Assembly (NCBI GenBank): GCA_025201805.1
Contig: MU619275.1
Coordinates: 36,700-100,699 of the forward strand
Direction of reading: 5' to 3'
From: Parasitella parasitica NRRL 2501
Taxonomy: Eukaryota > Fungi > Mucoromycota
DNA: 64,000 bases
A model generated the notes under the pieces. That model searched no databases. It worked only from the letters and a program-made list of their open reading frames with translations, and was not told the origin of the DNA. Positions 1-26,749 of the stretch are shown here, piece by piece; positions within the stretch are counted from its first letter, which is position 1; every line of letters starts with the position of its first letter. A program made the translations under genes and the position numbers.

Positions 1-924
1 CCAAGACATGCAACTGGGATCGGTTCAATCAAGCATTGCGATATATATTTCGGAATTTTCAGACGATTAAAGACTACTACACAACTGGATTAAAAAAACT
101 CAAATACCACAGCTATAGGAATAAGCAAAAGGCATTGACCGAAATGTGCAAGCGTTTGTTTACAGGTAGCAGAAAATATCAAGAAGACAATCCTGATATA
201 CAGCAAGCAAATCAACAAAAGTGGAAACCGCTAGCCCCTAGAGACAATGCTGGTGAGGCTGAAAGACCTACAGTGGTGGCGTTTGGCTCTGCTCTGTTCG
301 GTGGACTTCGTGGGAATGTACCCTCTCCAACAAAAGTGTTCAGAAAAGCCTTGCTAAATTACGTCAAGTCGATCAGACGGAACCGACCAAATTCAAGAAA
401 GTACGTGGTTATGATTGACGAGTACCTGACAAGTCAAATATGCCCCAGATGCCACCTACGAAGTACTACTAACGAACGAGACTATGCCAATTTTAAGATC
501 CATCCAGTCTCAGCTGCAACACCTGTCACACTCGATGGAACAGAGATCATATGGCAAGTCTCAATATGCGCTCAATCTTCTTGCATATGGCTGCCAACAA
601 CAACAACCGGCCGGGAGAGTTTCAGCGAGGTATGCTATCATGATATTAATATGGATTTGATTATTTCATAGACTAATATCACTATTATCGTTTGCACACA
701 AATAGCTTAAGCAATACTATGTCTTGCATAACAGCAAGACACCCCTTATTTATGGGTAAGTTAGCCTATTGAAAAAAAAAAGTTTGATTGGTCCAAAAAC
801 TAATATGTCCCCTTCTACTTATTGCTGTCCCATTACTGGTGTCTCACTTTCATTGCGACGTCCAAATTCAATTTTAAAATGACCCAAATTTTTTCTTACT
901 GGCCCAACCTAGTTTCGTCGACTG
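1..924 (+). mobile_element. Right arm of a Fanzor-carrying Tc1/mariner-type DNA transposon
   Basis: Ends ...AGTTTCGTCGACTG|TA (reverse complement CAGTCGACGAAACT, a CAGT start flanked by TA at 925-926). The left end is outside the window, so the TIR pair cannot be confirmed. Confidence 0.65.
3..710 (+). pseudogene. Fanzor (TnpB-like RNA-guided endonuclease), C-terminal half; begins upstream of the window; frameshifted
   Basis: Frame is open from base 3: KTCNWDRF...RNKQKALTEMCKRL...VVAFGSALF...VVMIDEYLTSQICPRC (RuvC-II Glu plus first CxxC). After a -1 shift at ~509 it reads LSCNTCHTRWNRDHMASLNMRSIFLHMAANNNNRPGEFQR (second CxxC, RuvC-III Asp at 545-547). Probable last intron 630-705 and TAA at 708-710. 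Confidence 0.9.
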
Positions 925-945
925 TATACTCAGTGTACTAAAATA
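711..945 (+). ncRNA. Candidate Fanzor omegaRNA region (scaffold plus possible guide)
   Basis: Lies directly 3' of the Fanzor ORF. Perfect 8-bp stem TGTCTTGC-ataaca-GCAAGACA (720-741) and a small ACCC/GGGT stem (741-757). Boundaries are inferred from where Fanzor omegaRNAs normally lie. Confidence 0.4.
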
Positions 946-989
946 AATAAAAAATTCATCTTTATTATTTAAAAAGACTGATGCTTTGC

Positions 990-1945
990 CTTATTCTACC
1001 CTCGCAATCTTCTCTGGTCATTTCTATACTGCAATCTCCAATATGCTGCAAAAACTCATTGCTGCCCAAGCCTGACGTTTTTCTTGTCAAAGTTTTGAGC
1101 TTTTTGAGAAGCTTTCTTCGATTGGGTTCAAAAAAGGCGAATATGGAGGCAAGAAGTGTATTTTATGCCTTTTAATCTAGATAACTTCACGGGAAGTATG
1201 GATTCCAGCATTATCCATAATGAAACAATGCGGCGCAGCGTTACTATCATCGAGTCTTTTGATCGATGGTTTCAGAAAGTCGATAAAATTGCTAAACTCG
1301 TGCCTCTCCTTTTACATATTTAGTGGAAACGTCTTCAACATTTTTGTTCGATATTGCCGAGATGATGGTAACGTTCAGCGCTCTCTTCATCTTGGTAGTT
1401 GTCGTACCGTTTTCGTCTTTAAGGGGCCATTTTTGCTGTCGGGTCAGGTTTACGCTAAAGCCTGATTCATCTACAAAGGCACAATTAGTTTTGTACGATA
1501 CCCCAGGGTCTTGCAAGGATTCGACAAAAGTCTTTCTTGAGGCAATGGTAGCCGTTATTTTTTCTTTTTTTTTTTTTCAATGGGCTTTAATCTTTTTAAC
1601 GTAAATCCGATGTGTTTTATGATACGGAGAAAAAAGTCTGATAAAGAGATGCCTTTCTCACGGATATCATCAAACTTCTCATACAACTTGTCCCGCACCA
1701 TTCCAAGAGTTAGAGCACAGTTTTTATTCAAAAGTATAATCTGATATTCTAAATGAACTTCGTTAAGTTTGCTGGCTTCAGTCTTTCTGCCGCCTCTTGC
1801 CTTTGGCGCAACCTCATACGTGTTCACCCAGTAATCCCTGATGCTATCAATTGTTGAACTTCAAGCCAAATAGTCTAGCAGCTGTGGTGACGCTTATATC
1901 TCCTTCCCTGATTGTCAAATCAATTATTTTCTCGTAAATCTCTAA
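990..1945 (-). pseudogene. Tc1/mariner (IS630-like) DDE transposase, degraded
   Basis: Fragments across several frames: HTH region (IIDLTIREGDISVTTAARLFG; APKARGGRK), IGFTLKRLK, FVDESGF (D1), IMDNAGIH (D2), FLPPYSPFLNPIEESFSK (E). Multiple stops and frameshifts. Confidence 0.9.
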
Positions 1946-24540: not shown

Positions 24541-26749
24541 TAGTAAACGAAATTCGAGAATTAAAATTAATTATTAGACCTTTTGTTTACCTTTTTTGGA
24601 CGAAATAAAAATGGAAGTGAGACAGAAAGAATTAGTTTTTTGAAGAATAAGGATTTATGTTTAGACATTTACCTGTAAAAATCTAAATCCCTTTCGGGAA
24701 GACCATGTTTATTACGGCGATTAAAATCTGAAGGTCTTCCTCTCCCTGCCCAGATGGACAAAGAGATGCTCATCATATTTAGGCTTGCATTAATGTCTCT
24801 CTGCCACACAGTTTTGCAATTAGAACAGGACAAAACGGAAAACCCTTTGAACCCTTTGGTCTTGATTATTTTTGTCTCGGAAAGGCAGAGGCAGCATTTC
24901 TTGGAGGTGTTAAATTCATTGATTGTACAAACAATCACTTCACCTTCTGCTTCACGTCTTTTTAAGGCTCTAAAAAATAAATCAACTACACCGTGCCGCA
25001 ACCCTTTGAATGTAACATGGTTTTTGTTAAAAACGCCATCGCCAAAGATTACCAAGGGAATTTTGTCTTTGAATTGGTCGAACTTGGGTTGTTTCTATTT
25101 AAAGGCTCTACAAAAAAGGTTAACTCTTTACAGTTGATTCATATTCTAATACAAAAATAGTAGTTTACTTTGGTTGAGGTTCTACTTTTCCACAATAGCG
25201 TTGTTATAACTAGTGGTAATTTCTATGCAAGCCTCACTAATACATTGGGAAGCCCCAGGAATACGTGTTACTGTATGTGCGAAAGTTGGATTGTCCGTCT
25301 TGAAGCTATTCAATAATTCCATAAATTCATCAGGGAGTTCTTTTTTGCTCGTAGGTGCTTGCCCGTTGACCATTTGGATTACAGTGTACCAGAAATTTTG
25401 AGTAAAAATACACTTGGGAGCAGCAATACACTCGGGAGCAGCATCATTATGTCTTTTTAAAATATAGTAATTGACAAGCAGCTTCGCCTTAAAGACCAGG
25501 TTGCGGACGGTGGAGCAGGCATTGACAACTTTTTCGTTCAATTTGCTTTTGTAGTCATCATGTACAGCTTTATTGAACGATATTCTCCTTGAAAACGCTC
25601 GATAATTAGTACCCAAATTATCCTTCAAAACATCAGACCTTCGTTCAGCACGTTCAGTACACAGAGCAGAGCGTCCATTAACGTGGCCTGGCTGTTTACA
25701 CCTCGCGCAAACTACATCATCACTTTGGTTTGAGCTACTACTTTCTCCCAGTTTTGCTTTCTTTTTATCATTTTTGGTTTCTTGAGTTTGTTTTCGTTTT
25801 CTCCTTGTACTGGAACCAACTACAAACATAAAAAAAGAAAACTATATTTATAAAGATATCTTTTTGGCACTTTGCGTTTTAGTTGTTTACCATCACTAGC
25901 TGTACTAGCTACATATAGCTCACACTTAAAGTAATTCTTTGTAAGATGACCACTTTTTCCGCAGTCAACACAGGTTCCATCTAAAAGCCAACAGTGTGAA
26001 TGAAAGTGCAAACGGTAATTATCTTATATTTACCTTCATAAGGATCTGCTTTATACTTTTCAAACATCTCACGTTTCTTGTCATCAATAATTGTTTTAAA
26101 CTCTTTATTACACATTAAGATAGAGAAACAGATAAAGAGAAGGAAAGAAAAATGTTGTAAAAAGATTCTGATATCATTGTTCTTATCATATAAGGGGTAA
26201 CAGTGGTTTGTAAACAAAATTCATCAGTACTGATATATTAGTGTGAATGAGAAAATCAATTATAAGGAAGAAAGGACGAAAAGCAATTAGCGCTTTTAAG
26301 CAATACGACAAAAACACATTTGAAGATGAGTCGTATTTGTATCATTCTCTTTATATTTTTTTGTGCCTTAATATCTTACTAAAGAGCATCTTTGCAGTGT
26401 TGATTTTTTGGCCGCTAAACATGCTTAACTTTGACTAAAAAAAATACCGCTGCTCATGCTCTAATTCTTAATGACACTTTTCGTGCTCACAATATTTTGC
26501 CACGCAGATATTTATATATAATATACACATTCAGGGTCATTATAGGTAAATGTCTGGGAGATTCTCTTGATGTAAAATTCGGCCCAAATAGACCTTCACT
26601 GGTACTGAACGAATATTACAGAAACGCCTCCCCTTGTTCCTCTTAAAAAAAAACTCTCATTTCTAATTTCATCTCATCCAAAAAAAGGTAAGCAAAAGGT
26701 CTAAAAATTAATTTCAATTAGCCCAAAAAAAAATTAACATCGTCTGCTT
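24541..26749 (-). mobile_element. Non-autonomous Fanzor-carrying TIR element (outer boundaries approximate)
   Basis: Inverted repeat 24559-24623 versus ~26655-26719 (core TTAGACCTTTTG[T/C]TTACCTTTTTT...GGA). The degenerate start TAGTAAACGAAATT at 24541 resembles element 1's CAGTCGACGAAACT. No intact TSD and no transposase. Confidence 0.7.
24669..26115 (-). pseudogene. Fanzor nuclease with two N-terminal CCHC knuckles, internally deleted
   Basis: N-terminal exons: CVDCGKSGHLTKNYFKC, CARCKQPGHVNGRSALC, LLVNYYIL...IFTQNFWYTVIQMV...TSYNNAIVE. Abrupt junction at ~25185, then AFK*KQPKF...PLVIFGDG...INEFNTSKKCCLC...LSCSNCKTVWQRDINASLNM...GRP. RuvC-I region is absent. Confidence 0.88.

Follow-up and report, generated by a model that had tools for sequence, protein, structure and literature searches.

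How does a TnpB-type nuclease obtain its guide RNA when it is carried by a transposon with long repeat ends? TnpB and Fanzor proteins need a scaffold RNA that directly adjoins a guide derived from the flank of the element, and this adjacency seems incompatible with an end of approximately 100 nucleotides (nt) of transposase-binding repeats because the repeats would separate the scaffold from the guide. The question is raised by a stretch of 64,000 nt from the fungus Parasitella parasitica NRRL 2501 (contig MU619275.1, positions 36,700 to 100,699, forward strand; hereafter, the window). Positions 1-926 of the window are the right-hand 0.9 kb of a 4.4-kb transposable element (C39:33221-37623; the window starts at C39:36700) that carries a Fanzor1 gene. 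It is highly likely that this is a Fanzor1 pseudogene copy in a non-autonomous Tc1/mariner element whose family is expressed and spliced. Taken alone, the broken copy is nothing unusual among elements of this known kind. New here are RNA contigs that show the 3' tail spliced, with the exon that holds a hairpin joined to the element end next to the flank. We tentatively propose, at slightly less than an even chance, that the spliced tail is the omegaRNA, so that the spliceosome would assemble the guide RNA of this Fanzor family. If true, the family would provide the first case of an RNA-guided nuclease that depends on pre-mRNA splicing for its guide; the literature searched contained no description of a Fanzor guide RNA with a spliceosomal intron.

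The features of the window on which the argument draws are as follows.

1-629 (+): 3' part of the Fanzor1 coding sequence, in frame 3 to about 508 and in frame 2 at 509-629; the window begins inside the gene.
420-452 (+): RuvC-II Glu codon (420-422, IDEY) and first zinc-finger CxxC (441-452), read directly; aligns with DEYKTSSVCPRC of SpuFz1.
507-508 (+): private loss of 1 nt, one T against TT in sibling copies, which shifts the frame (alignment A1).
515-547 (+): second CxxC (515-526, CNTC) and RuvC-III WNRD with its Asp codon at 545-547, in frame 2; aligns with WNRD of SpuFz1.
630-705 (+): intron A, 76 nt, GTATGC...AATAG, phase 1; matches a joint 627->704 in run X2 ("skips 76, GT..AG (cut +2)").
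706-755 (+): exon 2, 50 nt, comprising the last codon (G629 plus CT), TAA at 708-710, stem-loop 1 (SL1) at 720-741, and a 14-nt linker.
756-912 (+): intron B, 157 nt, GTAAGT...CCTAG, with an A-run, subterminal repeats, and the right terminal inverted repeat (TIR) except for its last 12 nt.
834-924 (+): right TIR, 91 nt, with a private 5-nt deletion near 833/834 (repeat search and alignment A1; left end read directly).
913-926 (+): exon 3, made up of the final 12 nt of the element (913-924) and the TA target-site duplication (925-926).
927-946 (+): candidate guide in the flank, by analogy with TnpB and Fanzor and of assumed length; X2 contig record 14 covers 927-1171 exactly.

Transcripts were sought in Logan contigs of four public runs (X1, X2, X4, and X5), which were placed on positions 1-1400 of the window. 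These contigs collapse repeats and drop minor branches, and a missing variant therefore proves nothing; their depths are no measure of expression, and they are silent on RNA ends, strand, and protein binding. The joint 627->704 and loose contig ends at 622 and 755 were present in X2 only, while the DNA runs X1, X4, and X5 were without them; X2 is RNA only by guess. The diverged copy C12 is also spliced at the position of intron A (X2 contig, loose end 622), and a relative of the family (L071) has a GT at the same codon as the 5' splice site of this intron. Another X2 contig follows the window up to 755 and resumes at the final 12 nt of the element, followed by TA and by 16 nt identical to the flank of sibling copy C61. 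These contigs show that the family is transcribed and that two GT..AG introns are removed in sibling transcripts.

TAA 708-710 becomes the stop codon because intron A is removed. A preliminary description of this locus, which was made from the sequence alone, had predicted this stop, with an 8-bp hairpin 10 nt after it. The hairpin was confirmed (TGTCTTGC / GCAAGACA at 720-741, with a 6-nt loop), and the stop was retained with the refinement that it is in frame only once 630-705 has been spliced out, as in the X2 joint. The same description expected an RNA over 711-945. This part is transcribed in the family; however, the RNA is not contiguous because intron 756-912 is removed.

We regard exon 2 as the candidate scaffold of the omegaRNA. 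In local folding of the joined tails from coordinates (706-755 plus 913-926 in family 1, the family of the window element), those of family 1 and of a second Fanzor family in this genome (family 2) folded alike into SL1, a linker of 9-10 nt (9 in family 1), and a 7-bp second stem-loop (SL2). In the predicted fold, the 5' arm of SL2 is the end of exon 2, and its 3' arm consists of the last bases of the element and the TA of the duplication. The exon-2 ends UAUGG, UACGG (in C56, C72, and C12), and UGCAG (family 2) all pair with CUGUA, against a background of 6/191 pentamers before splice-like sites in the window. The distance from SL1 to the flank is 26-28 nt in the spliced form versus 183 nt in the unspliced form. 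SL1 itself appears to be maintained in relatives: in copy C12, one C-G pair is replaced by U-A and another by the wobble U.G, and the ATAACA loop recurs above another stem in relative L076. In intron B, the stretch from ACTAAT to the 3' splice site is free of AG.

Family 2 (loci L023, L025, L026, L027, L029, and L030) is multi-copy and has the C-terminus ...IWCGNGRPQVFKR and TIRs of the same type as those of the window element. Its tail after the end of the open reading frame (ORF) contains a 12-bp hairpin, a 15-nt linker, CAG|GTAAGA, a TACTAAC box, and an AG-free TIR, and the splice acceptor CCTAG| lies exactly 12 nt before the element end. Family 2 loci L025, L027, L029, L030, and L075 are located on contigs C5, C58, C75, and C37, with 3.3 kb at C75; the element ends in ...TTTCGTCAACTG|TA, and its TIRs are related to those of the window element. 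Metagenomic relatives with 26-39% protein identity mostly have GTAAGT or GTAGGT 23-60 nt past the stop, which suggests that the 3'-tail intron is old and conserved in this fungal Fanzor clade. Contigs with such relatives are L078, L079, L081, L082, L088, L089, and L091. In L079, the TIR is of the same type, and the exon ends in UACAGU, which is perfectly complementary to ACUGUA. The distant relative P0014 / L072 showed neither a comparable 3' structure nor a comparable TIR.

We propose that these elements function as follows. A Tc1/mariner transposase encoded elsewhere would mobilise the element in trans, and the Fanzor protein produced by intact siblings would bind an omegaRNA excised from the 3' tail of the transcript that encodes this protein. 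This omegaRNA would consist of SL1, the 9-nt linker, SL2 across the exon 2/exon 3 junction including the TA, and then the guide, and splicing would remove approximately 160 nt of transposase-binding repeats that otherwise part the scaffold from the guide. The flank past the TA would serve as the guide, with which Fanzor would cleave the vacated donor site; the break would then be repaired from the filled copy, and the element would thereby be restored, as in TnpB-style restorative homing. The protein of an intact sibling is predicted to perform RNA-guided double-strand DNA cleavage dependent on a transposon-adjacent motif (TAM). Since the TA was preceded by T in 5/5 left flanks, we infer a T-rich TAM that ends in TA.

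Several properties of characterized systems bear on this proposal. The guide of Fanzor follows the right end of the transposon (PMC13565253, PMC10432273), and the 3' duplication is part of the Fanzor1 omegaRNA scaffold (PMC13565253). In the solved Fanzor1 omegaRNAs, a 7-bp SL1 comes first; the shortest of them, at 71-75 nt and with a 4-bp SL2, belongs to PpFz1, a Fanzor1 of Parasitella parasitica (PMC11423790). PpFz1 (Xu et al. 2024, PMC11423790; PDB 9cf0-9cf3) shares with the spliced window tail an SL1 of 7-8 bp, a 6-nt loop, a short linker, a short SL2, and then the guide, as well as G|GUAAG 12-14 nt past SL1. Moreover, it is of the same fold class as the structure model of the closest relative, P0001, and resembles the window family weakly in its acidic N-terminal DDDFQ-P-I/V-x-R motifs. 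However, sequence similarity between PpFz1 and the window family is very low (E 0.4 for the C-terminus). Furthermore, the RNA of PpFz1 is contiguous and lies about 50 nt from the element end, whereas the same spacing in the window family needs the removal of a 157-nt intron.

The alternative that survives best is that intron B is an ordinary intron of the 3' untranslated region or a competitor of guide formation, with an omegaRNA that extends unspliced from the hairpin across the entire TIR into the flank, or is of another kind. We regard this as a substantial possibility that falls clearly below an even chance. An unspliced contig (726-834) is also present in X2, known Fanzor1 omegaRNAs are contiguous and reach 150 nt, and the PpFz1 scaffold holds an unspliced GUAAGC motif. 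A precedent is provided by the IStrons (bacterial IS605/IS607 elements, PMC10690162), in which splicing and the omegaRNA are in conflict. IStrons are the nearest known case to an intron in a guide-RNA region and, like the window family as proposed here, combine a transposon-borne TnpB-family nuclease with a guide region that overlaps an intron, with one RNA as the substrate of both splicing and guide formation. However, the IStron intron is a self-splicing group I intron that extends over the entire element and competes with formation of the omegaRNA, whereas those of the window family are spliceosomal GT..AG introns proposed to build the guide RNA. Against an unspliced omegaRNA, the contiguous sequence 706-946 folds no better than shuffles (z -1.31), and SL1 would be separated from the guide by 183 nt of transposase-binding repeats. 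In addition, the splice geometry is common to two families, and the exon junction makes a helix that ends exactly at the TA.

Assembly of the guide by splicing nevertheless has to be weighed against several points. The 755->913 junction is found in one contig of the one run guessed to be RNA, and it derives from copy C61 (L038 4509), which is 5'-truncated at the window-equivalent position 467. The spliced RNA of C61 must start outside the element because of this truncation, and the contig may come from a host transcript that reads through the copy. In family 1, SL2 includes three G.U pairs and is weak. For the AG-free zone upstream of the 3' splice site, the significance is only weak (P about 0.04), and the zone may be accounted for by the repeat motif. 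The GCAG|GUAAGC that the contiguous omegaRNA of PpFz1 carries 12 nt after SL1 could indicate that this motif is a scaffold element rather than a splice site; PpFz1 may share it as part of the scaffold or may retain a remnant of the same splice site. As to the element as a whole, its protein is a composite of copies C64, C9, and C12, and the nuclease role of the family is a predicted one.

The structure of the element was read from its ends and copies. The left TIR (L031 522-612), located 3.4 kb 5' of the window start on the same contig, pairs with 834-924 over 91 nt at approximately 97% complementarity, and TA lies outside both element ends. The 3' boundary was placed at 924, followed by TA 925-926, because 8 copies are alike through ...CGACTG TA and have unrelated flanks (alignment A1, BLAST). 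At least 8 copies of the family are present in the genome at different TA sites, and TA was found on both sides of 5 complete copies and at every right end. The TIR termini are CAGT...ACTG. The preliminary description had placed the end at ACTG|TA (924-926), called it mariner-type, and anticipated a matching left TIR upstream, and each of these proposals agrees with the copies compared here. Subterminal tandem repeats are found at the left end (L031 600-700; approximately 5 units of approximately 19 nt, ATGAAAnTGGGACAnCAGT), and 2 or 3 lie at the right end, all within intron B; they are presumed to be transposase-binding sites.

No transposase was found in the examined parts of sibling copies C64, C9, and C12. 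A transposase with an HTH_Tnp_Tc3_2 domain (43.9 bits), ending in ...GGNTRY, is encoded at L021 (C185:31211-34277), and the terminus 270 nt past its end matches those of the Fanzor elements at 87% identity over the terminal 67 nt. L021 is thus a candidate autonomous partner. No GTAAGT was present between the L021 transposase stop and the TIR. The C-terminus of this transposase is ...AVIEANGGNTRY, and, 2 kb upstream, this contig also contains a distant Fanzor match (C185:30228-30626). Since no transposase is visible in the element and its termini are common to L021, the element is, by its content and ends, probably a non-autonomous Tc1/mariner-type DNA transposon that carries only a Fanzor1 gene.

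Similar elements with only a Fanzor1 protein, Mariner TIRs, and TA duplications were described in 2013 (Bao & Jurka, PMC3627910), and such Fanzor1 genes, many of which have decayed, have been on record for early-diverging fungi from that year. They include PUl-4 and families in Mucor, Rhizopus, and Phycomyces, and, as in the window family, the TIRs are of the Tc1/Mariner type and the elements are multi-copy. No 3' introns, hairpin, or guide RNA were described for them; this comparison was made by description.

By its motifs, 1-629 is the C-terminal third of a Fanzor1 nuclease. Frame 3 up to approximately 509 reads ...VVMIDEYLTSQICPRCH...KIHPVS and includes the stretches VVAFGSALFGGLRGN and KYVVMIDEYLTSQICPRCH, and frame 2 beyond the break reads LSCNTCHTRWNRDHMASLNM...NNNRPGEFQR. 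In IDEYLTSQICPRCH, the RuvC-II Glu (420-422) stands six residues ahead of the C4 zinc finger (Cys 441), which is the Fanzor/TnpB2 arrangement (PMC13565253). The reading agrees with the Fanzor1 C-terminal motif, which has been defined as D ... [TS][TS]xx-C4 zinc finger ... RD (Bao & Jurka 2013, PMC3627910). The window begins downstream of RuvC-I, the Asp of which (GLDPG) was read in sibling copies C12 and C9. The protein part encoded at 1-629 has 83% identity with the protein piece of C12.

Profile and structure searches pointed to the same protein family. PF07282 (Cas12f1-like TNB) matched the intact sibling C-terminus at 40.6 bits (cut-off 26.3); the window piece 5' of the break reached 19.5 bits, under the cut-off because the piece is truncated. 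An exhaustive hidden Markov model search with the RuvC-I/WED piece of copy C12 yielded 254 relatives at E<=1e-3; the profile for this search covered 253 positions of this first piece only. A profile of the relatives and family pieces matched only SpuFz1 (1.4e-13) and GtFz1 (9.3e-8) in the PDB, with alignments that matched the motifs GxDPG, DEY-x5-CPxC, and WNRD. Foldseek with an AlphaFold model placed SpuFz, GtFz, and PpFz at ranks 1-7 (E 3.6e-12 to 3.4e-8), followed by Cas12f, Fanzor2, and TnpB; the model is that of the closest relative, P0001, and not of the window copy (predicted local distance difference test score 69, template modelling score about 0.3). No match in the PDB was obtained by phmmer with the N-terminal/REC piece or with the RuvC-I piece, and the ESM Atlas matches were generic TNB clusters only. 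The identification as a Fanzor and the RuvC-II/zinc finger/RuvC-III layout given in the preliminary description were both upheld by these readings and searches.

The upstream part of the protein was pieced together from parts of copies C64, C9, and C12. The upstream ORF of C64 (L032 1182-1844) is an acidic, Ser/Thr-rich N-terminal exon with two DDDFQ-P-I-x-R motifs, and its best PDB match, a weak one, is the N-terminus of PpFz1 (E 0.02). Motifs of the form [DE]n-DFQ-x-P-I/V-x-x-R are also present in PpFz1 and in relative P0014.

The best profile and structure match was SpuFz1 of Spizellomyces punctatus (Saito et al. 2023, PMC10432273; PDB 8gkh), with which the DEY...CPRC, WNRD, and RPE-F-R C-terminal motifs align. 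Like the window element, SpuFz1 lies between inverted repeats, and its TAM, CATA, ends in TA, as expected for a TA-duplicating transposon. However, the SpuFz1 locus measures 2.1 kb and comprises one intronless ORF and a contiguous 90-nt omegaRNA, whereas the window element is 4.4 kb and has long TIRs with subterminal repeats and 3'-tail introns.

At least 24 further, more distant Fanzor loci are present in the genome. One of these, a second and divergent Fanzor C-terminus, was noted in the window at 24669-25055 (-) (PF07282, 38.4 bits). It appears to be degenerate, has a splice-like GTAAAT at the ORF end, and is followed by the TIR-like motifs TGTCTCACTTCCATTTT... and TTTCGTTTACTAG, to about 24530.

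The second question concerns the state of the window copy. In alignment A1, the window reads CCAG-TCTCAG versus CCAGTTCTCAG in five other copies (C56, C64, C72, C61, and C12, the last with 80% identity), and sibling C64 has a single open frame across the break region. A -1 shift near 509 had been said to restore the C-terminus of a copy one base from intact; the restoration is explained by the private loss of a T at 507/508, and the phrase holds relative to these five siblings. Other private changes in A1 include three amino-acid changes within 130 nt (T483, G568, and G615) and the 5-nt TIR deletion. As assembled, the copy is a pseudogene by its reading frame. We consider it fairly likely, at about two in three, that the frameshift is real in the organism, and the window copy is probably dead.

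A less likely explanation, which we hold to be rather doubtful, is that the frameshift is an assembly or consensus error and that the copy in C39 really has the open C-terminus of its siblings. It is favoured by the presence of the extra T in every contig spanning 507 in the four runs, including X1, which holds the C39 insertion junction itself (contig 900-1061, record 6), and by the absence of the private letters at 483 and 568 from all contigs. However, Logan contigs lose minor branches and collapse repeats, X1 contains the private G615 at a depth close to single-copy, and the cluster of private changes resembles decay more than a single slip. If the frameshift is real, the window copy could still supply a guide to a sibling-encoded protein because SL1, both splice sites, and exon 3 are kept.

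The least credible alternative, that the hairpin at 720-741 is a DNA feature such as a protein-binding palindrome, or a chance palindrome, and not an RNA element, is very improbable: a simple terminator-like scan matches it on both strands and an Rfam scan of 500-1100 gave no match, but the hairpin lies outside the TIR without a left-end counterpart, is transcribed in the contigs, keeps its stem pairing in C12 and its loop in L076, is replaced by a different hairpin at the same place in family 2, and resembles the SL1 with which Fanzor1 omegaRNAs begin.

A decayed Tc1/mariner-type transposase remnant was noted at 965-1830 (-), adjoining the right end of the Fanzor element. It contains the motifs FVDESGF, FIMDNAGIH, and LPPYSPFLNPIE, several stops, and a weak DDE_3 match (22 bits). 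The candidate guide of the window copy (927 onward) thus lies in the 3' tail of another transposon. Homing of the family into one Tc1 sequence was considered and dropped because no shared target was found among the flanks (all-vs-all BLAST); among the copies compared, such a remnant adjoins only that of the window. The flank of the insertion junction, 941-987, is nearly missing from contigs of the DNA runs X4 and X5, one of which has the same species label and the other a different one. The C39 insertion may be strain-specific.

Should the spliced RNA prove to be the active guide, the family would represent a eukaryote-specific way in which an RNA-guided nuclease of prokaryotic origin adapts to a new host transposon. 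This would explain how a TnpB-type system lives inside long-TIR transposons. Guides predicted from contiguous genome sequence would then be wrong for such families, which bears on the search for compact Fanzor editors. Moreover, the coupling of guide production to mRNA processing would become a testable question.

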